This document shows positions 10,201-63,600 of a stretch of 64,000 nucleotides of DNA, in pieces. A program made the position numbers and the translations under genes. Each line of letters opens with the position of its first letter. Positions within the stretch are counted from its first letter, which is position 1. Where the stretch lies: the NCBI GenBank assembly GCA_965202585.1, contig OZ241833.1, forward strand, positions 30,752,001 through 30,816,000, read 5' to 3'. Below the pieces are notes generated by a model that worked only from the letters and a program-made list of their open reading frames with translations, was not told the origin of the DNA and searched no databases. This DNA is from Thalia democratica. Taxonomy: Eukaryota.

Positions 10201-13200
10201 AATTTTTATACTTAATCTTTTTTATTTATATGTCGGTAGATTAGTAGAAAATTGATTTAAAACATAAAAATCTTAAATGGAAAATCAAAAAAAACGTTTT
10301 ATTCTAATCACTCAATAGATAAAGGCAAACGGATTAAATTTTCCTTATCTTGATATATTCCAAGAAAAGGAGGATACATTTCTGTAAAATTTACCGGACT
10401 TATTGAACTAGATAAGCGTGTTTGCATAATATTAATCTTGTAAGATAATTTTCAACAAAATAATTAATAAAAGATAAAGTTTGAAGTATCAAGAAACATA
10501 TTTTTTGAACATTTCTTTACATTTATATTGTTGAACGCAAAATGTGCAAGAGTAAGCCTAAAAATGAGCTCATTTTACAATTAGTCCAAAAATGTTTTAT
10601 TATTATTTATTTATTATTTATAAAATTTCATAATTGTTGTTTTAGGCTGTTAAGTTATTTTTTATGTTCAAAGGTCCAGAAATTAAACTTAGTAACCATT
10701 TTTAAATAGCCGCAAATTCTACACTAGTGACCAACTAAATTAGATTTTTATAACTTATTATAAAATCACAACGCTCAGCATAGCTAAAACCTCTGTCAAA
10801 TTTAGTATTTCGTAATAAAATAATATATGTAAAACTACTTTGTGTGAAAAAAGTCAACATTTATAAAAGCTTTGCAAATACTATTTCATATAAAAACTTA
10901 TCAAAATTAAAATAAATCTTCCACAAACCACAACCTTATTTTTATACAAAAACTCAAACTATCTTAAATGCAGTTATACCAGTTATTACAAAATTATATA
11001 AAAACAAAATTTAAGTAACATAAACATCCTACATTTGTAACAAAAACAAAACGAGACTAATTAAGAACCCGGATTTAGTTTTTCAGTTGAGAATTGCGAG
11101 TGCCTTGTTTAAAACCATAAGTATGAATTGAATATTTAATCAAGAAAGTAACTAAATCTGAGACCCAGTTGAATTGTGGGATAGAATATATATTACAATA
11201 ACAAAAATAATTTGTTTTATAATATTTTTAACTTTAATAAAAATAACACAAACAACTTCTACAAGCTCTTTTTCGGGGAAGCACTCAGTCAAAGTGTGGA
11301 CTAAAAAAATATTTTTGAACAACAAAAGTAAATCAGTTATTTTAATTGTATGCTCCAACAAGAAAGTAACAAACATTTGTGAGTTCTTTTCTGGGAAACA
11401 CTCGGTAAAATAGTGGGATGAAAGTATATATCAAAATAAAAAAACTTTTTTTTATTTAATTATTACTAATTTAAATAAAAAAAGTAACTAACTTTGGTGA
11501 GTTCTTCCTCTGGGAAGCAAGTGTGGTTGCCTATGTTGTGTTCGGTTTTGTAAGCTTGCAATTGGTCGTCAGTCCACGATTTAACCGTCGCCACGTCCTC
11601 CTCCGTGAACTCTGACCTGTGATTGGTTGAAAAAAAAAAGTTATAAATTTTTTCATTAAACTGATGTATCAACTTGCTTATATCATATCTATAATTTTTA
11701 ACTATACGGCTTATAGTCGAGTACTAAAATTTTATTAGCTTTTTGAAATAAGAAAAATAATTATCTCAGAAAAACCATTAATTCAATTAAAATCAAAATT
11801 AAACACTATTACAAGTAAAAACTCACCCGAACAAGCACTTGTAGTAGGACTGTTGCGATTTGAAGCCGAGAATGGAGAAGACGGTGAAGCAGGCGAATAT
11901 GGAGGTGGCGCAGTTGGCCGACGCCACGAATATCGCGTCCTGTTACACATACAGCTTGAGTTTGATATTCATTGTTATCAGTTTGGTATTTGTTATTTTG
12001 TTTAGATACTAATTGTTAACTAACTTGTGAAGCATTTTCAAGCACATTTTTACTAAATGACTACAAAAAAACTCTCTTATTGCAAGCAATCTAAGCTTAA
12101 CAAAAGCACGAATATTACGTCCTGTTATACAGTTTCAGTTCGATATTCGAAATAAAGTTCTATTTGCTATTTCAACTTAATGCAGCATTTTTTAATTTGT
12201 TATATTATTTTGATACTAGTTGTTAACTTGCTTAGTAGCATTTCGAGTATACATTTAGCAACTGACTTTATATAGAATTGGTCGTTGCAAGCAATGAAAG
12301 CTTAACATTTACAACATTTTCAATTAAACAAACAATTATTAAACAAACCTTCATGCAGTTGTTGGTGGGGTTGTTGTAACTCGAGTAAGCGATGATGGTC
12401 CCGTAACCCAAACCCAAGCTGAAAAATATCTGCGTCGCCGCGTCCTTCCACACTGTTGCTTCCGACAGTTTGGTTATCTGCATGAAAAATATACTTTGTC
12501 AATGCGGATAATCGAGTTGTCCGGATAAACGAGTGACAGGGAAAAATAACTGAGTCGTCCAAATAAATATGTACTTTATAAATCCCAATAGCAGGTGACA
12601 AAATTTACGCGCAACTGTAAACGAATTTTAGATGTATCCAAAAAACTGTTGGATACAGGAAAAAAACTGTTGATAAAAAGTTTGAAATTGTCAAACAAAC
12701 ATGTTATTTAGACGATGCAAACGAAATTTGGGTTTCAGCACGTATTGTGCGCGACTGCAACAGCCAACTCTAAAAATCTTCAGAACTCTATTCAAGCTAA
12801 TATTCAAAAAACAAACGTTGGGCTTCAGCATGTACACGACCCCGTTGACAGCACCATCCAGCGTCACGCCCCTGAAGAAGAAGATGATCAGTACGAAGTA
12901 CGGGAAGAGGGTGGCGAAGTACATGACCTTGCCCGACGACTTGATGCCCTTGACGATGCCGACGTACACGAGCACCCAGGCCAGGGCGAGCACTCCCAAC
13001 ATCTGCCAGTTGATGTCACCTGTTTAAAATTATTTGGTAATCATTAATGCTCATTATTCATTGCAGTGGTACTTATTATAAAACGATGACTTATTGATAT
13101 CCTGTTTTTGGAAAGTTTCTAAACTTTTTTTTTCCAATTTTTTCAAACACAAAAACTTTTTCTTAGCAAGTCTGGCCCGCAAATAACTAAAAAAGTTGCA

Positions 13201-13760
13201 GGCCATTCATTCATTAAAGTGAAAACTCCATAAAAGTTTAAAACACTATCAATAACTGTTTTAGACTAATCTCTATTTGTTAATCTAAAAAGCTTTATAA
13301 AGTTAAAGTAATACACAATAAAACAAAACAATTTTCACACCAACCTCCTTCATTCATGCTTTCAGAGATGTCCAGCGTTTCCCTGTACCAGTACCACTCG
13401 GTGGCGCTAGAGGCGTTGCACTCGGGCAACAGGGGCGAGGAGTCGTTGCCGGGGATCACGTGAGGACATGACGCCCATGGCAACGGGTTTTTGAAAGAGT
13501 TGAAGAAGTAAAAGAATGCCCAGCCAAGGATGGTTGTGTAGTACAAGCCTATTAAGAGTGATATCTGAAAATAGAAAATAAATTAGAATATACTGTTTTG
13601 TTTAACTACTGTTGTCTTTTTTGTTATTACTTTAGTTTATTTTAGGATGGTTGTGTAGTATATTCCTATGAGGAGGGAGATGCAATTATGTATGTAGAAC
13701 TAATGGAAAAAAATGTTTTTGGTTGAAAACAAACACAAGATTACTTTTGTATACAAAACC

Positions 13761-13801
<41 letters not shown>

Positions 13802-15374
13802 GTAGATAATTATTAATTTTTTATCAACATTGTTGTGTGTACAACCCTATGAGTAGTTATATCTGCAACTTTATGTGTGCATTTTAATACTCTAGTTTTT
13901 AATCATTGCAATTACTTGTTATAATTTGAATTTAAAACTGTGTGTTTGTTAAAACATTAACTTTCACAATATTTGTTATTATCATTAAATTCAAGTACTT
14001 ATGATGAAATCTTGACTATAGCCTAAGCTTTTTCAATCTCATTTACTATCAAAAGCTTAACTGTTAGAAAACAAAAATGTTGTTTATATTCTGCTACTTT
14101 CAATATAAATTTAGAGCTCCACGAAATTAATTTTTTAATAATACAACTTGAAGACTTTATTAAACTTAATTCTAAAACTTAAAATAATTTATATTTTGAC
14201 ATAGTAGATTAAAAATTATTTGTTATCACTGCCAGTTTTCAATCAAATCAACTAATTAGCACTATTCAAAAATCATAAAGTAATAAACATTATCATTATT
14301 TTTGTAAATCTAGTAGACATAAATAATTTTTTATATTTACAATTTATCTTAAGTACAATAAGAATATTATGAAAAATACATTTGCTACATGCTTAATCTG
14401 TCAAACTATTACAGGAAGCATAAAAAAAAAGTTACTGAGAAAAACAATATAATACAAAACACTAGAGTATTATGACGCCACTAACCATGTTGCTGGCAAA
14501 CCCGATTCCTCCCAGCATTGGGTTCATGTTGCACCACACCCCGATCGTCCCCTTCCTGATCTTCTGTCCCAACGCGAGCTCCAGAAAGTACAGGGGGTAG
14601 CCAAGCACAACCAGCATCAGCAGGTAGGGGATGAGAAAGGCACCTGTTTGTGGTAAGTAATATTTATTTAAAAAAAAAATTCTATTTAAGTGCTGTGTGT
14701 AACAGTATTTTTTTAATTGGTTGCGAAAAGTAGTCTTTTTAAGTTTTATAAACTGGTCATAAAATTGAAACTAAAAAAAAAGGTTTTAATTCACAACTGC
14801 AAACATCTAATAAGGTCGCATGTGGTTATTGTAGCAAAAACATATTAAAGACATTCAAATGTCTTGTAAATACTATTTAAAAAATTTAACTAGTTTTATG
14901 TCAAAAACAGTTTGTAAAAACTATTGTATTTATCTAATAACATTTAAACAGTTGCTATAAAAAGTGGTTGAAGTAATTCACACAGTGGGCATAAAAAATA
15001 CAACCCTCAAAAAAATAACAACCACTTTTTTCTGACACAGGAACACATAGGGAGAAAATTACAGAAAACAAATATCAAACTCATTCAAACAAATTTAAAA
15101 ATATTATATTAACTCTTTATGCAGTAGATAAAAACAAATGTATATTTTAGAAACAATAATTACCTCCCCCATTTTTCTGGCACAGGTAGGGGAACCTCCA
15201 TATGTTTCCAAGACCGACGGCAAACCCCAAAGCCGCCATCAGGTACTGGAACTTGTTGTCCCACGAGTCCCTCTTCTCAGAGTTTTTGGACGGGGTTGAA
15301 ATTGACGATGAGTTGTCTTCAGATGAGTCATTTTTCTTCAGCTCCACCGAAGCTTCGATGTCTATGTTTTGCAT
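4111..15374 (-). CDS. SLC6A15: SLC6 (NSS) Na+-dependent neutral amino-acid transporter, SLC6A15/16/17/18/19/20 branch (B0AT2/NTT4-like); 3'-partial, 9 coding exons
   Basis: Exons (minus): 15374-15164, 14643-14486, 13564-13345, 13019-12817, 12477-12349, 11939-11827, 11616-11493, 4875-4807, 4252-4111. All GT-AG with continuous phases (456 codons+1 nt). Motifs: [108 protein letters not shown]. An in-frame TAA lies upstream of the ATG. The symbol is family-level; orthology to a single vertebrate paralog is not established. TM10-12 exons were not found in 1-4110. Confidence 0.93.
4320..4342 (-). mobile_element. Isolated Charlie/hAT-type terminus fragment
   Basis: Reverse complement caggggtcggcaaactgcggccc resembles Charlie-type hAT ends; no partner end seen. 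Confidence 0.55.
4491..4737. mobile_element. hAT-type MITE with 8-bp TSD
   Basis: TIR cagtggtcttca / tgaagaccaccg; TSD agctaatc at 4483-4490 and 4738-4745. Confidence 0.88.
4807..4875 (-). CDS. SLC6 coding exon 8
   Basis: [23 protein letters not shown]; cag/gtatgt. Confidence 0.92.
6935..7154. mobile_element. MITE, same family as 26377-26508
   Basis: Ends aaagttcagtctgatttgaatatttgctgaat ... attcagcaaatat..ctgagcttt. Confidence 0.65.
11493..11616 (-). CDS. SLC6 coding exon 7 (extended EL4)
   Basis: [41 protein letters not shown]; phase 2 in, phase 0 out, matching its neighbours. Confidence 0.85.
11827..11939 (-). CDS. SLC6 coding exon 6 (TM7)
   Basis: [38 protein letters not shown]; donor gtgagt. 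Confidence 0.92.
11925..12310 (+). repeat. Diverged ~200-bp tandem duplication including the SLC6 exon 6 acceptor
   Basis: cacgaatatcgcgtcctgtta.. (11925) vs cacgaatattacgtcctgtta.. (12107); gatacta..gcaagcaat..aagcttaaca repeated. Confidence 0.75.
12349..12477 (-). CDS. SLC6 coding exon 5 (TM6)
   Basis: [43 protein letters not shown]. Confidence 0.93.
12817..13019 (-). CDS. SLC6 coding exon 4 (TM4-5)
   Basis: [40 protein letters not shown]...LKPN. Confidence 0.93.
13345..13564 (-). CDS. SLC6 coding exon 3 (TM3, EL2)
   Basis: [33 protein letters not shown]...[20 protein letters not shown]. Confidence 0.93.
13767..13797. repeat. (TA)n microsatellite
   Basis: ~15 TA units. Confidence 0.95.
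14486..14643 (-). CDS. SLC6 coding exon 2 (TM2)
   Basis: [53 protein letters not shown]; cag/gttagt boundaries. Confidence 0.93.
15164..15374 (-). CDS. SLC6 coding exon 1 (N-terminus, TM1)
   Basis: [10 protein letters not shown]...[21 protein letters not shown]; donor gtaatt at 15163. Confidence 0.93.
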
Positions 15375-15415
15375 TCTCTTTGATTGCTTTTTGATTAATT
15401 ATTCTAATTGAATTT

Positions 15416-27436: not shown

Positions 27437-27644
27437 TTAAAAATTCTGAAAGTGTGATGATTGGCGGTTTTCGAAGTTGGGGTTGTCATGACCACCGTCT
27501 TCGAGGGGAAGTCCCTGGTCCTTTTTGGCGCGAACGGAAACAGACGTGGAAGCCATTTCCGTCGCTTCGTATTGTCCATCCCTGGTGCCTCCGACAGAGT
27601 TGTCAAATAGGGGGTTTCCGAAATTTCCCCGCGACTTTTTCGTG
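27437..27644 (-). CDS. Terminal exon: cytoplasmic tail and stop
   Basis: [17 protein letters not shown]...[17 protein letters not shown]. The ORF-track frame at 27427-27708 is a different, incorrect frame. Confidence 0.85.
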
Positions 27645-30600
27645 CTGCAGGAAGTAAGATTTTTTTTTTGTGTTTGTAAATAAATATATACTGCAGTAAG
27701 TAAAACAAATGAAAATTATTTCTTGTAAACTTTCATCAAGTGATAAAATTAGTATAACTTCATTTTAAAATCCTCAAACTCTTTATAAGTCTTTTTTTAC
27801 AAAACAACTTTAATCTGGACTAAAAACTATATCAGTTGCATCGAACAACAGAATGCTAGTTTAATAAAAATGTTTTAAACAAATATAAAAGAATTAATAA
27901 ACAAATATATATATATATATATATAACTCACTATACGGATCTGTCGTACAAGTACCAGAACAACAAAACGACGATGGCAAGACCGAGAATTGAACCAATT
28001 ATTATCCCCGCCACTTGACCTTTAAATTATTATTTAAAAGTTTACATTTTATTTACTTAGTACGAAGTATTTTTTGCACGGTTTAAAAAAGATTTTCACT
28101 AAATAACGCTAAAAAAAGTTTTTAATATAAAATACTTATACGTAACAAAATACGTTTAAACATATAAACGTGTTAAGCCTGCTGGTATCAGATATTAACA
28201 TTACTTTATAACAAACCATAACTTTTCATTTGTTTATTTTAAACAACTCCGATAAACTTATTAGTATCCTTAAATAAAGTACGCTTTAAAACCTGCTGAA
28301 GTTTGATTGTTTATCCTGATGTTTAATTTTACTTTAGAGTCAACAAAACGTTCTAAGAAATTTCAAGCACTTTCCATACAAAAATACAACTCAACAAAAA
28401 CACGTATATTTTTGTTTGTGCATTTATCAAACCATACCTCCGTTGATTCCGTCGGTGTCCTTCTGTTCCACGGGATCCCTCTTCTTCTCGCACCTCACTC
28501 CCACGTACCCGTCATCACAGTTACAAGCGGGCCCCCCGTTGTTCACCAGGGAGCACTTCCCGTGGGACGAGCAGTAGTTGGGCGGGCACGCGGGTTGGCA
28601 CAGGCTCTCGTCCGTCTGTTGGTATGTATGTGTATTATGTTCATGTATTTGATGCGAGTGTAAAACGGTTGAAAAGTTCCTTAAGATTTGTTAAACGCTG
28701 TTATTATGGTGTGTACTAGTATAGTTTAAAGCATAAAAAAATTGTTTAATTTCTTTTGGATTGATTTAAATTATGCATAGTTATTACTTGAATGCGGGTT
28801 GACACAGGCTCTCGTCTGTCTGTTTTGATAAGTGTGATTCTAACTAACAGCTCATATAATAAGTTTAGCAAAAAATATTAAAACATTTAAAGCCATAGTC
28901 TTTTGTTGGTTATATAGTAAGTACATGTGTGAGATGGTTGAAAAATTCTTTAAGGTTTTATTAAACAATTTACTTTATATACACTAACTTTAAGCTTGTT
29001 TTAGAATACAATGTTCTTAAGGTTTTGAATAACTTTTGTTACAAAACAACAGTTATATACTAAACACACGTGCAACACTTACCATGAAGTTCATGCAGTC
29101 GACTTTTCCGTTGCACAGCAGCGAAGCGTCCAGGCACTGCCCGCCGCCGTTGTAGCAGTAGAACTGGCCGGCCTTGCACTGGTTGCTGCATTGCGCCTCG
29201 TCCGCTGCATTGCTGCAATCTGCAACGCCGTCGCAAACGTACAATCCCGCCACGCACTCGTCGTCCTTGCATCGGAACTGTGAGTTGATTAAAAAAGTTG
29301 TTCAGAACCGCTTTGATTGTGAGTTTAATTTGAACAACTGCTCGTTTGAGGTGAGTTTTCTAAAATGTAATTTAATACACGGTTTCGACGCTCTTTTTAA
29401 ATTTCCATAGACTAGCTGCGCCGGAAAAAAGTAATGATTTTTTTTATGTTCAATACTTCAAAAACACTACAAAGATTGTGCAACTCTTGAAAAAAAGCTT
29501 CATTCAAGTTAATAAGCGTAGAAAAGTGTAAACATATAACTCATTATGTTTTTGACTTCAACTATTTATCTGATTTTCTGAGCTAGTTTCTACTGCTACT
29601 CAATTTTACTTTACTCAATTTCTTCAGACTAAACATGTCTCGCTAATAGAAGAACAAAATATTTTTTGTTTAAAGCTTAAATTATAAAGAAACAAAAGTG
29701 GCATCAGAACAAAGCCCTTAGTAAAATTACAATGCTCAAGATGTACAAACCTTTTAATTTTTTTATTTAGTTTGAAAAACAAACCTGGTCGGGTCGACAC
29801 TGCCCGGTGTTCTGGCTGGGCGTGGTCTGCTGCGGATGCGTCGACACTGGAGGGCAGCCGACCTCGTCGTAACCGTCGTCGCAGTCCGTCACCCCGTCGC
29901 ATTTCCACCTAGTGGTCAAGCATTCGACGACTCCGTTTCTCGCGCACGAAAACTCGTCGGAGGAGCAGACTAAAGGCGGAGGGGTGGGAGAAGATCCTGT
30001 TGATTTTTATGACGTCATAATAACAAGTCTTAGTGATTTTAAACCGAATAATACTAAAATAAAGGTAAATATGCTTAATATTCATTTCAATGTTTGGTGA
30101 TATTAGAAAAGTTTTTGCAAACTTTATGACTATTTTAGCATTTCGTAAAAACTTTGTAAATCACTTCAATGAACAATACTTTATGGATCTGTTTAAAAAT
30201 AAGAATTTATTATCTATGACGTCACATACCTGTGGTGCACTCCTTGTTGAAGGTGACGTCGTCGATGGCAATAACTCCCCCGTACTGGGTATTCCCCGCG
30301 CCCGCCGCCCCTTCGAACTGCACGCGGAAGTCGTGGGTGGTTGCCAGGGGAACGTAGGCGTACTGCCACTGGGCGTCGTACAGCACCGAGTAGCCGACGA
30401 AAGTGGCCGCAAGCTGGCGCGATTTACCGTCCGCTGATTGGACGAACACCTTGAGGATGGTGGAAGTGTCCGAGCCTGTCATTGGTTGAAAGTTTGATTG
30501 TTGACAATTTAAGTGTAAAACAGTTATCCATCCTAGATTAAATACCAAACACCTTTATGTTTGAATCTGGTAGAATTTGGCGTCGAAGTTTCAAGACTCA

Positions 30601-57600: not shown

Positions 57601-60600
57601 GTCCTTGTGCGTCTGCCAGGGTACAGTCGTGGTGGGTGGGCCGGATGTTGGGCAAGCGGTTGGAACGACCACGATGTCGTCCAAGGCTATGTGGCCGGTG
57701 CCCTGCTGTCCACTGGATGCTGTTTGCGCTGTACAAACAATTGATGAGCTTAATGATAATTCATTTTTCATAGAAGTTTTTGTGTAAAATTGTTTTTTAT
57801 AATTTTTTTGTTTATCTTTTGTTGAAAAAATTTGTTTATAAAGCAAATAGCGCTCAAATCAATAAAAAAACGTTGTAAGACTACTTAGAACTTTGCAAAA
57901 ACTTTGTGTGACCGTAAACTTTTATAAACTTTCAACTGGTTGGCAATCTACAGCTTCTCAGTTAAAGAATAAACAAAACAAACAGTTCCACCAACAAACC
58001 TTCAAAAATGATCCAGAAACTTTCCGCTTGGCTGAACTGCAGCTGCTGCATCTTCCACACGTTGCCCTGACTACCGATCTTCTGCCACTGGGAGGCTGAG
58101 GGGTTGGGGCTGGACTGCGTTGCCACTGACAACTTGAGAGTGCCTACCCCTTCGCCGTACATGTGGTAGTAGAATGTTATGCACCTGAAACGAGGGTTAA
58201 GTTTAAAAACTAGAAAAATATCTTGCAAGCTTGATGCGTCGCAGCAAACATTTTGCGGGATTAAAACAAAGTTTATAGTATGGCAACGTTGAGTGAAAAC
58301 AAAATAAAAGTTTTATTTTTTAAAGTTGGGATGAAACTATTTTAAGGTAATAATCTTATATATGAGTTCAACAACGTAATTTTATTAGTTAAATGTAAGA
58401 AGCTTTCAACTCAAAGACAGTTGCATTTAAAACTAGGTTTAAAAAATTAAATTAAAACCTTCTGCTAGAATTACTAATTATATGGTATAATACCTGTCAG
58501 TGATACCGGTGGTTGTGTCAACGGTGAAAACTTCAGACAACAACTTGGATTTACTTCCGCTCGGTCCTGAGCTCATGTCCGCAAAAACCGAGTGACCCTG
58601 GCTCGTGTCTGGGTGTTATTTTATTTTACCTTTTAAATGCTTTTGATTCGTGTGAAAAAGTATCAAAGTTTAAGTAAAAAAACTGACATTAGTTTCCATT
58701 AAAATTTTAAGCTAAGTTTTTGGTTTTCTGTTCGATCGCAAAATAATGGAAACCAAAAATGATAAACCTCTATAGGTTTGGAGCATGCAGCTTTAGCATG
58801 CAAAAGTCAAGTTAGTCAACATTCTGTTTAGAAGTAACTCAACATGGCTGAAGTTTAATGTAAAACATAAAAAAGACTATGTTTGTGTTTGATATAAAAA
58901 TAAACTAACTTAAAATATTTTAAGTGAGTTTTATTGAAATCTCATATTATTACAAAATGTTATAATATTATTTTAATTTATATTCGATATTAGATATATT
59001 AGATAAAAGCACTTAGAAGATAAAAATTCACTAAATTGCTGTCTTGTTTAGCCCACCTAAATGTTAAGTTATCTAAAATGGTTATTAAAAACCTTATATT
59101 ATACTATATTAAGTAATTAAGTAATTATATTATAAGTTATACATGTTTTTTTTATTAAATTGTCACAAGCTCACCATTGATGTGGTCGAATTTTAATTAA
59201 TAGCAAAAATATATTATTATATGTAACTTCATTTGAAGAAACTCAAGTTAATCTTGTTCAAAAAGCTCACCGGTGGTGTGGTCAAACTGGGGGGCGACCT
59301 GCGAGTTGGCCCTGCTGTCCCACAGCCAGTCGAAATCGTCCCCTTTCGCGTTGAAGTAGGTGCAGAGGCCGGCCTCGAAGTCGCAGGTTCCCGGTTTGGG
59401 GCAGCTGCTGTCCAGCATCAGCACGTCGTCTATCGCCACCGAGCCCTGCGTGCTGTCACCTGCCGGAAGAAAAAAAATTGGTAACATGCGGCACTGAAAA
59501 AATAAAGTTGATGGTTTTAGTTGCGCATTGGCATTGTAGTTGTGAGATGTCAGTCACGCTAGATTTTGTTTTATGTGCATGATTAAAAATTTTATCTGTA
59601 ACAAGTAAGCTTTTCTTATCTTCGTAGGTTACAGTTGGAAAATATGGTCGAGTATTCAAGTAAAGACTTTATAAGTTATCATACACCTTGTACTAAATGA
59701 AATTGCATCAATTACAAACTACGCTATTTAGACTTGAAAAAAGCTATTAAGAAGCCACATGGTCACCTTTGTGAGCTTCGAAGGCCACTTACGACGTTGG
59801 GTACATTTCGGCTAACAAAACAAATTTAAATTGTTTACAAACCTCTGTAAGCTTCGAACACAGCGTTGTATTTGTACGCTGAAGGGTACATCTCGGCGTA
59901 CCCCAGCACCCAGGTGTCATCCGAGTTGCTCCCCTGCCTCACGAACGTCACCTGGTTGTGGTCGGTTCCCTGGTCCCTGACCTGCTGCTGAACCTTCAGC
60001 GTTCCCGCGTCGCCGCTCATAGAGTACCAGAACGTCAGGCAGTTGCCGCCTGATAATTTGTAAATAAAGTTAAATAAGTCAATATATTTTAACATTGATG
60101 GTGATAACGTAATAAAGAAGATAATTTAATTTATTTTGAATAATTTATTAAACCTTTAGTAGGAATGATTTTGAGCATTTAATTGGCTAGTTTTTTTGTA
60201 CATGCTAGTTGACTTTTTCAAAAAACCTAATTAATCAACTATTAATCAACCATTATAGACATACTTTGATAGATGAGTAACTTAAAAAAGACATAAAGTG
60301 TAAAAAAATAAATACAAAACAATGAAATCTCACCGAGACAGTTGCCCCAGTATCCGACGTACTCCGACGTCGTGGAGCACCAGGGCCTGTCATGGTCCTC
60401 GTATATGCACGTCCAGTGCTGTACCCCGTTGTAAGTGAAGGGGAAGGCGCATGGTAGGGAATTTCCCGTGCCCCCGGTGGTGTACACAATACCGCGCGCA
60501 CCGCACTGGAGCCAATCACCGTCGTATATCGGGTCCACGGAGCACCACGGCTCGCCGTTGTTGTTCACCGTCGTGCACTCGTAGTACGTCACGTTCTGTG

Positions 60601-63600
60601 TGAAAAAGGAGATTTTTTTTTGTTGAACTCGTTTTTAGTCGATTGTTGTTTTGAAACAAATGTTGAAAGGATTTATACTAACTTGATTGTAGGATGGCTA
60701 TTTATTACACTTTAACAATTTTAAAATCAATTTCTTGAGATTTTGTTAGTTCTTTTACCTAATCTTCGAAACACACACAAAGGTTTAAAGCTGATTTGTA
60801 GACAAACCGCATGAATTATTTATTTTTATGACCACCAAATCGAGGAAATTTAAATATATAGAAAAATTAAAGTTCCATACCTGGTAAACAAACGGGAATG
60901 AGCAGGAAGCTTCCTGGGCGGTAATGTACTCACGTGACTTCAAAGCGGCTTTTCCGCCAGATGGCGCCTCGTTGGGGTCGGCGAATGCGAACTGGCCTAA
61001 AGAGGCTCCTGTCGTGTGGTCGGTGGTCGGACCCGTTCCGTAGTTGGGGCTTCCTGTGATACAGTGTTTGCTTAAAAATAATTTAACAGCAAAAAAAACA
61101 AGAAAAAACAAAAATTTTTCAAAGATATATTGCAGATATTATTTAGTAAAAATGCACATAAATATGATTACAAATCTATTTTGCCATTTTATTTGAAGCA
61201 ACGACGTAACATTCAAGTTACCAGTTTAAACTAGTTTAAACCACATTAACAACAATAATTTTCTAAAAGTAACACGCGTCTGAAAATTAAACCACTTGCT
61301 AAGGCACACACAAGTATGCATTTATGTAAAGCATCTAAAACAAATCTGAATAAATTTTCCCAACCTTGACTGCCGACCTTCCACTGGTAGTCGCCGACGT
61401 TGGCGAAGTTGCACAGCCCCTGCTCGAAATCGCACGCGTCCTTGTCTCCGGGATCCCCCTCGCAGTAGCCGTCGGAGAACGTGACGTCATCGACGCTCAC
61501 GTCACCGTTCCAGCTTCCGGTCTTGGTGACGCGGAAGGCGAGTTTGTAGGCGGAAGTGGGGTTGGAGTAGTGGACGATGCCTGGCAGCCACAAGTCCTTC
61601 GAGCCGCTCGACGTTTTCGCGATCTGTGCGACGATTGATTTTTAAACTTGACGGGGTCGAGACTGCACTTGTATGAACTTTTCTTTTTAGTTTTGTTGAA
61701 AATTAAAAGTTGTGACGAAAATATAATTGTTTGTAATACAACAGTAGTACTTTTTAATATAAAGTAGTAGTAAAAACCGTGGTAAAAATAGGTAAAATAA
61801 CAAATGTTAAAAGTAAGAAATGAAAATAAAGCAACAGAAAAGCTTCGTTAATATATAATAGATTATTCTAATACTTCTAGCTACCAACTCGCTTTTGTAT
61901 TGTTTAAACCCTAGGCTACTTATCATATATTGATAAATACATTGTTATCCGTTTTTACAGCATCAATTTCTTTTAAGCTTTTAACATTTTTTTGAGTTAA
62001 GAAGTGATTCTAGTATACTAGAAAAAATATTTAATGTTCATATATCAAGCTTGAATAACTAACAACTAGCTCCTGCATTGAGTTCTCGTCAATCGCCACA
62101 ACTTCGAACGTTCCGATGTTGGAGCCGTACAGGTGGTAGAAGAACCTCATGCAGAACCCCTGGGTTGTGGTTTGGGGAAAGTACCTGGAAGTGATCAAGC
62201 GTGACGTCGTTCCCGCGCTCAATCCGTCGAAGTGCATGTAGTATCCTGGAGGTTAAACGTAAAATGTTTTAAAGTATGTTGATAAATTAATTAACAATCG
62301 GACCTATATCTAGCAAGTTTTATTTTCTTTTAATTTTCGACTTTGTTATTTTTTCGCTTGACTAAATAAATTTTGAAAGTTGATAACGGTAAATTACAAA
62401 AAGGTTGATGTTTAGTAACGTTCAGTGTAAATAACTACTGATATTTCCATAAACATTAGCTAAAAAACTATTCTATTTAAAGTTTTGCGTATAGTAACAT
62501 AAAAATGTCTTTAAACATTTACAATTATTTTAAATTGCTTTACCTTTCAAAATAATTCAACATTATTTTAAGACAAATTAACCTGTATCAATGGTGGCGA
62601 CCAGTGACACTGGACCATTGTGCAGCGGCTTGTACTTGCAGTCGAACCACGTTGGAATTTCTGTCTGGTCCCTGACCTTCATCGTGACCATCGTCCAAGC
62701 GTCGCGCGCATCTGTGTTGTTTGATTGTTATTTGTTTTGTGGATTTTTTCAAACGTTTCAAAATTGGAAGAAAAAAAGTAAAAGTTGTTAGATAAAATTA
62801 GTTTAATGACTTTATACGTAGAATTTAAGTTTTTGTCTGGATTATTTTGAAACTATCTCCTTACAAACAGCCTTTTCTTTCAATAAATTTAAACAAGTTA
62901 ACATAAAATTTAAAAAAATAAGAAAACAAACTGATCCTGATGGGGCAGTCGTCACCGCCTGCTCCCAGGCTCTCCATGAAAGCCACGTCCGAATCAGTGA
63001 AGTACAACCCCTCGGCAGCGTCCTGGACGGCCATTATTATGATTGACTCATACTCCACCTCTTCGTCCAAAAACTTGATCATTGCTTCCACCTAACGAAT
63101 AAAAATATTTGAAATTATCCATATCAGCAAAGATAAATTTTCATTTTTTCAAACAAAAAAAGCTGTATTTTTTGTATGATATGGTGTGTGTTTAAAATTT
63201 GATTCAACAAGTACATGTTGTCAAAAAATAAATATTACACGGTTAATTTCTGGTACCTTGGTCAACCGAACAATACTAAACTAACTAGCTCTTTTTTTGA
63301 GGATTTTGTATGTTATTGCGTGCTTTCGAAATTAAATGAAAATAAAATTTAAAGCTAAACATCAACAACCAAAACAAAAAAAATCTTATTTCAAACCCCA
63401 GCAGAAGTGACGTAATCATCTGTCTGCCAGGTATCGAAAGCCTTCGAGACGATGGTGTCTTTTACGGGATTGATCACCACAATATTATGCCCCCTAGTGT
63501 TCTTGCACAGGTCGTTTCCGTTCACCTCGATTATACAGTAGTTTCCGTCCTCGTATCCGGCCGATTCCGATTTTACGTGCCACGTGTCTGGATAATATAT

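Follow-up and report, generated by a model that had tools for sequence, protein, structure and literature searches.

A tandem FN2 pair nested in one MAM domain of a giant receptor-like gene of Thalia democratica

The FN2 module is a small two-disulfide unit, and the textbook case of its nesting inside another domain is that of the gelatinases. To our knowledge, nested domains are rare among extracellular modules. The DNA analysed here, a stretch of 64,000 nucleotides of Thalia democratica (contig OZ241833.1 of GenBank assembly GCA_965202585.1, positions 30,752,001 to 30,816,000; the whole stretch is called the window below), carries on its minus strand part of a giant gene in which one loop of a single MAM domain has a tandem FN2 pair as a permanent part. 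From the sequence comparisons set out below, the novelty of this locus would lie in its host: FN2 nesting, known from gelatinases, appears here in a new host domain, the MAM.

The closest solved sequences are the tandem FN2 modules of MMP-9, fibronectin (1F2-2F2) and MMP-2, with which the pair is collinear over both modules. As in the gelatinases MMP-2 and MMP-9 (1l6j, 1eak, 1ck7), tandem FN2 modules are fixed in a loop of another folded extracellular domain; however, the host here is a MAM beta-sandwich rather than the matrixin catalytic domain, the modules number two instead of three, and an intron lies inside the first of them (FN2 #1), whose first 8 residues share an exon with the host. 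With a MAM as its host domain, the protein falls outside the gelatinases, and it is only the working of the arrangement that is gelatinase-like. A parallel might also be struck with fibronectin 1F2-2F2 (1e88, 3mql), in that the spacing is similar and the T-x-GG-x-x-G lead-in of the second module aligns collinearly. In fibronectin, however, the pair is strung linearly between FN1 modules, whereas here it is nested, and FN2 #1 has no lead-in strand of its own, this being replaced by a MAM loop. As for the host, a MAM/LDLa membrane family has been described across cnidarians and bilaterians, including a coral protein with extra fibronectin, EGF and Trefoil domains (PMC4890752); FN2 nested in MAM is not described in that paper, though the coral "fibronectin" domain could be of any type. 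Like MAMDC4 (endotubin), MALRD1 (Diet1) and the coral "MAM and LDL receptor", the gene considered here would encode a MAM array with LDLa, then EGF and a membrane anchor; unlike them, it is far larger (~55 MAM domains), and it is likened to them by architecture.

The nesting is evident from the exon structure of the interrupted MAM, in a gene whose exons are GC-rich and whose introns are AT-rich. The features, in the direction of transcription, are the following (two positions separated by a slash denote an RNA joint):

61365..61623, minus strand: upstream exon (Pfam MAM positions 107-157), which closes the preceding ILEI-bearing MAM with its C-terminal strands and, after a short linker, opens the interrupted MAM with its N-terminal part (...WKVGSQ); RNA joints 62064/61623 and 61365/61053.
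61053..60881, minus strand: exon E1, 173 nt, phase 1 in and 0 out, with the MAM N-part (DHTTG...) and the first 8 residues of FN2 #1.
60904-60881, minus strand: start of FN2 #1 (CSFPFVYQ), the last 8 codons of the MAM exon E1.
60596..60880, minus strand: intron inside FN2 #1, 285 nt, GT..AG, phase 0.
60595..60334, minus strand: exon E2, the FN2 exon, 262 nt, phase 0 in and 1 out.
60503..60595, minus strand: remainder of FN2 #1 (NVTYYEC...WCS...DWLQC), fn2 positions 5-42.
60452..60502, minus strand: 17-residue linker that includes the TTGG lead-in strand of FN2 #2; T39, G41 and G42 are invariant in the orthologue alignment A1.
60338..60451, minus strand: FN2 #2 (CAFPFTYNG...RPWCSTT...YWGNC), full length, fn2 positions 1-42.
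60050..60333, minus strand: intron after FN2 #2, 284 nt, GT..AG, phase 1, two residues past the last Cys of FN2 #2.
60049..59843, minus strand: exon E3, 207 nt, phase 1/1, with the MAM C-part.
59271..59459, minus strand: next exon, which completes the interrupted MAM with its last strand and begins the following MAM (N-part, Pfam MAM positions 1-38); RNA joint 59843/59459.

Splicing was assessed on window positions 57900-62300, to which three RNA runs and a DNA run from a related organism (organism B) were mapped. The RNA contigs cover exons only, with zero depth in the introns, and the DNA run covers both exons and introns. Five joints were found in RNA (62064/61623, 61053/61365, 60881/60595, 60334/60049 and 59843/59459), all bearing CT..AC ends, i.e., GT..AG on the minus strand; some single contigs join the next exon, E3 and E2, and others join E2 and E1. 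The two FN2 junctions come from two runs of one marine metatranscriptome sample, and 61053/61365 was also seen in a second study. The joint 60881/60049, which would skip E2, was not found in the RNA contigs of the three runs: within the available RNA, the FN2 exon is always spliced in. Together E1, E2 and E3 amount to 642 nt, and when E1 is joined straight to E3 the frame is shifted and a stop follows after 4 codons. Nor does E2 look like a cassette exon, its phases 0/1 being asymmetric and no skipped isoform occurring in the RNA contigs. The FN2 insert cannot now be removed by splicing, and the asymmetric phases show that much and no more.

In the spliced product, the MAM N-part is followed by FN2 #1, the linker, FN2 #2, the residues LG and then the CLTFWYSM strand with the rest of the MAM. 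Pfam matches E1 to MAM positions 29-80 with 25.0 bits, just under the 26.4 cut-off, and E3 to positions 73-136 with 30.6 bits, collinear with the E1 half; under a MAM model built for this work the two halves score 50.9 and 48.8 bits, in the range of the uninterrupted repeats, while the flanking exons provide the beginning (CDFE..C) and the end (AIDDV) of the domain. For E2, the Pfam match is to fn2, in two stretches that score 68.2 bits (E 6e-19; the curated cut-off of PF00040 is 22.2 bits), and in a scan of the genome FN2 #2 reaches 47.4 bits and FN2 #1, though scored there without its first 8 residues, 32.1 bits. In each module, four Cys stand at the usual spacing (13, 9-10 and 12 residues between them) together with the FN2 aromatic core (FPF, Y, W-C, W-x-x-C), and both the Cys and the core are invariant in alignment A1. 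That the two MAM matches overlap at profile positions 73-80 is an effect of the alignment, which sets the beginning of FN2 (C-S-F-P-F-V-Y) against the MAM strand C-L-x-F-x-Y; the strand proper (CLTFWYSM) lies in E3, and the insertion point is therefore the loop just before the C-L-x-F-x-Y strand. An initial annotation, made from the letters alone, had read this region as a MAM N-half, two FN2 modules and a MAM C-half at 59843-61053; these positions are exactly the end of E3 and the start of E1, and Pfam agrees with the reading. Its further statements, that FN2 #1 starts inside the MAM exon and that an FN2 exon of phase 0/1 allows no in-frame skipping, are borne out by the 8 codons that close E1 and by the stop that an E1-E3 join meets; likewise, RNA joins 60881 to 60595, and the PF00040 search it had proposed clears the cut-off.

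The same unit exists beyond this genome. When E2 was searched with phmmer against 1.84 billion representative proteins, 1,197 matches were obtained, of which the best 150 were examined. The most similar of these (60–71% identity) are short open reading frame (ORF) calls on genomic contigs, with ends exactly matching E2, and the contigs that bear them (L085/L086, L032 and L031) carry the whole MAM-FN2-FN2-MAM unit, so that the interrupted MAM is present in at least three other plankton lineages. In L085/L086, the latter being a Tara Oceans metagenome scaffold, the introns are only 56–85 bp long; E1 reads ...QKASCVFPFVYQ followed by gt, then comes E2, and then E3 beginning GNCLTFYYSM. L032 is a 36-kb contig with the neighbouring MAMs in the same order. 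On the pieces from all of these contigs, Pfam returns MAM, fn2 and MAM, and both introns of the unit, the one within FN2 #1 and the one of phase 1 that follows FN2 #2, occupy identical positions in L085, L032 and L031. Related sequences were drawn from marine metatranscriptomes and from a Tara Oceans metagenome, an origin that indicates a planktonic animal of the sea; a search of the genome for glycoside hydrolase family 6, intended as a tunicate test, returned nothing, and its controls were silent as well. The FN2 exon is 59–66% identical to that of the window, as against 29–68% for the MAM-coding part of E1 and 53% for E3, which makes the insert no less constrained than its host. These comparisons indicate that the FN2 insert in the MAM is old and has been kept by selection.

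One further feature of the E2/E3 border may be recorded. The last 13 nt of E2 (60334-60346) and the first 13 nt of E3 (60037-60049) share GGCAACTGYCT, which encodes G-N-C-L. As a direct repeat left by insertion it was rejected, the DNA repeat being absent from L085 and L032; at the protein level, C-L-G/G-x-C-L across the border is kept in the orthologues.

Variation within the FN2 exon points the same way. In the RNA variant, 8 synonymous and 0 replacement changes fall in codons 40-87, which span the last part of the linker and the whole of FN2 #2, and FN2 #1 with the linker shows 4 synonymous changes, with replacements confined to loops (NNNG to GSTDG, D>E, Q>T, A>E and Y>W). At window positions 60559-60565, in the variable loop of FN2 #1, this variant gains one codon and differs at four bases, and all Cys and core aromatic residues are retained. 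In the DNA of organism B, all six differences in the FN2 exon are synonymous (6 synonymous, 0 replacement). These patterns are those of purifying selection on the FN2 insert. The fixed domain-in-domain insertion that had been proposed at the outset thus stands on five observations, namely an exon that is constitutive in the RNA available, phases that allow no skipping in frame, a single copy, orthologue introns at identical positions and a substitution pattern of constraint.

As to copy number, the FN2 pair is single-copy in the 802-Mb genome, the next-best FN2 being at most 54% identical over one module. Elsewhere in the genome there are at least 32 FN2 exon matches, and in a motif check none of these had a MAM beside it. 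The wider searches give a similar picture. Among the best 150 of the 1,197 FN2 relatives, no MAM was found (by the MAM model built for this work on all 150, and by Pfam on the 24 longest), a result that goes against the architecture being already common, the concern raised in the initial annotation; the partner domains in these 150 are Sushi, PAN, EGF, TSP1, SEA, Tectonin and matrixin, and the only nested FN2 is that of a matrixin, P0015. The JGI metagenomes and metatranscriptomes, scanned with alignment A1, yielded 52 FN2 loci, none of the 52 MAM-adjacent, and no spliced orthologue. A homologue search with the 130-residue open frame, in which the exon is scored alone, returned three ORF fragments and no spliced protein, and the ESM Atlas returned plain fn2 clusters only. 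Full-text literature searches found no paper that describes FN2 inside MAM. One further candidate, P0136, was dropped as an ordinary single FN2 exon on a 747-bp contig. P0015 merits a mention in its own right: the catalytic domain of this metagenomic matrixin of 697 residues holds nine nested FN2 modules, i.e., three times the number in MMP-2 and MMP-9.

The host gene was modelled from the window and 90 kb upstream of it (L087-L095) with a simple splice-aware model, which reproduces all RNA-supported junction borders but one (a donor 6 nt off) and is rough, with some exons in the wrong frame. So modelled, the gene extends over ~115 kb (~27.4–142.4 kb in window-plus-extension coordinates) and codes for ~9,500 residues with ~55 MAM domains; Pfam also finds Ldl_recept_a (55.4 bits) and EGF (25.5 bits). 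Its end lies within the window:

27440..28615, minus strand: 3' end of the gene, with an EGF exon, a candidate membrane-helix exon and a tail exon.
28615-28438, minus strand: EGF exon, matched by Pfam EGF.
About 28022-27940, minus strand: candidate membrane-helix exon, hydropathy 2.88.
Stop at 27440, minus strand: cytoplasmic tail exon with the motifs NPLF and NPNF (HDNPNFENR).

The phases, running from 1 through 1/2 to 2, place the EGF, candidate helix and tail exons in one frame. NPxY/F motifs are internalisation signals of LDL-receptor-family proteins, and NPLF and NPNF resemble these. With its alternating MAM/LDLa repeats, C-terminal EGF and single candidate membrane helix, all features of the MAMDC4/MALRD1 type, the host is predicted to be a type I membrane protein of giant size, comparable in kind to MAMDC4 (endotubin) and MALRD1. 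Across its MAM repeats, introns fall at dozens of sites, in all three phases, and are almost never shared, which suggests heavy intron turnover. Intron position was accordingly dropped as a clue to the origin of the insert: with positions and phases so scattered, no reliable inference can be drawn on exon shuffling of the FN2 pair.

The FN2 pair is one of three inserts in this gene, for three of the ~55 MAMs are interrupted, each in a different loop. The first insert, of ILEI type (with weak collinear ILEI Pfam matches), follows DHTT-x-G in the preceding MAM and has three exons of its own; the second is the FN2 pair before the C-L-x-F-x-Y strand; the third is a 77-residue Cys-rich piece (...YNCPGLAANLNCADGVCNGQKVGCCFDNYQLACFPCSGPCKPD...) after the CELSFYFHM strand, in which no FN2 match was found. 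The last lies outside the window:

G000:C9:30826558-30827057 (loci L088 and L087): third insert, about 10.6–11.1 kb beyond the window end.

The ILEI-type insert is comparable to the FN2 pair in that it sits in an adjacent MAM of the same gene and is likewise conserved in orthologues (L085 and L032); it differs in occupying another loop and in having been called a phase 1-1 cassette in the initial annotation, while the FN2 pair cannot be removed in frame. That a neighbouring MAM also bears an insert had been noted at the start, and its retention in the orthologues now adds to that observation.

Taken together, the favoured reading is that the fixed FN2 pair, in a MAM that still folds, adds collagen-like or proline-rich binding to a multi-ligand, probably endocytic receptor; a probability of about 0.6 may be assigned to it. 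In this reading, the MAM sandwich would still fold around the insert. FN2 #1 would be tethered through a MAM loop of ~10 residues, whereas between the last Cys of FN2 #2 and the Cys of the MAM strand there are four residues, L-G-G-N (CLGGNC), a tether so short that FN2 #2 should therefore sit directly on the edge of the sandwich. The pair would then carry two outward-facing aromatic pockets, the binding site typical of FN2, for which the likeliest ligand, by analogy with gelatinases and fibronectin, would be collagen-like or proline-rich. Gelatin or collagen would be expected as ligands from the family to which the modules belong and from the aromatic core that they retain. The pair may accordingly be seen as one more specificity of the receptor beside the ILEI-type module of the preceding MAM, and a receptor function would fit the LDLa and EGF domains, the frame-compatible candidate helix and the two NPxF motifs.

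Several points weigh against this reading. The RNA contigs are 91–97% identical to the window and, being ~3–9% off it, therefore come from a close relative or a divergent allele; they are, moreover, assembled contigs, compatible with rare isoforms. The candidate membrane helix and tail represent a splice-phase model without RNA support. A three-chain run of E1, E2 and E3, folded without alignments, scored 0.02, a neutral outcome as to whether the MAM halves reassemble. In L032, the E3 equivalent (L032:4835-5040, GSCLSFWYHIS...) shows two apparent frameshifts, which, as this contig has only 4x coverage, may be sequencing error or decay alike. FN2 modules also bind ligands other than collagen; PDC-109, for instance, binds phosphorylcholine.

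Of the alternatives, the one that survives best, though it is unlikely, is that the FN2 pair is structural only, i.e., a rigid disulfide-rich spacer or intramolecular clamp with no external ligand, which might, e.g., pack on the ILEI-bearing MAM or aid oligomerisation. Purifying selection would be expected here too, as it shows constraint and not its purpose, and the very short CLGGNC tether of FN2 #2 suggests tight packing on the host; however, the pocket aromatics shared by the Pfam consensus, MMP-9 and fibronectin are kept in both modules and in all orthologues, and a mere spacer would need none of them.

Somewhat more doubtful is a non-collagen ligand in the FN2 pocket, be it choline phospholipids, as in PDC-109, or a component of the mucous net or tunic. 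PDC-109 (1h8p) is indeed among the solved relatives of the pair, and the at least 32 FN2 exon matches in many gene contexts speak for broad use of FN2 in the lineage, whereas the best collinear two-module matches are all gelatin-binding tandems (MMP-9, fibronectin and MMP-2).

To be ranked on a par with the latter, as a tentative extension, is the view that the MAMs are a loop-display scaffold, with at least three modules in three loops of three MAM repeats making an evolvable multi-specific receptor whose FN2 pair binds a collagen-like or matrix ligand. Of the scaffold on a scavenger-type receptor envisaged in the initial annotation, the receptor half has gained from the LDLa and EGF domains, the candidate helix and the NPxF motifs of the host, whereas the display half rests on 3 of ~55 MAMs.

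Very improbable is that the FN2 exon acts as a regulated switch, its skipping leading to a truncated secreted receptor or to nonsense-mediated decay. The stop that follows 4 codons after an E1-E3 join does lie well upstream of the candidate membrane helix, and assembled contigs leave room for rare isoforms; against this, the skipping joint is absent from all RNA runs examined, and the phases 0/1, the same in all orthologues, are the opposite of what a cassette needs. An artefact, i.e., a misassembly or chimeric model joining an unrelated FN2 exon to a MAM gene, has nothing found in its favour and is already refuted by single RNA contigs that cross E3-E2 and E2-E1, by four independent assemblies from other organisms with the same order and junctions, and by the exon that MAM sequence shares with the first Cys of FN2 #1.

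Elsewhere in the window, at 12,300-15,400 on the minus strand, the open frames suggest by eye the exons of a sodium:neurotransmitter-symporter-like (SLC6-type) gene.

The finding makes the MAM a second, independent host for nested FN2. A gene with three different nested inserts offers a natural test case for the tolerance of a beta-sandwich to whole-domain grafts, and also for how a graft becomes fixed when intron phases forbid its removal. If the display scaffold were true, a planktonic filter feeder would possess one evolvable multi-specific capture or endocytic receptor. The ligand of a fragment of ~260 residues, which is of expressible size, could reveal the role of a very large, unstudied receptor in abundant ocean plankton.

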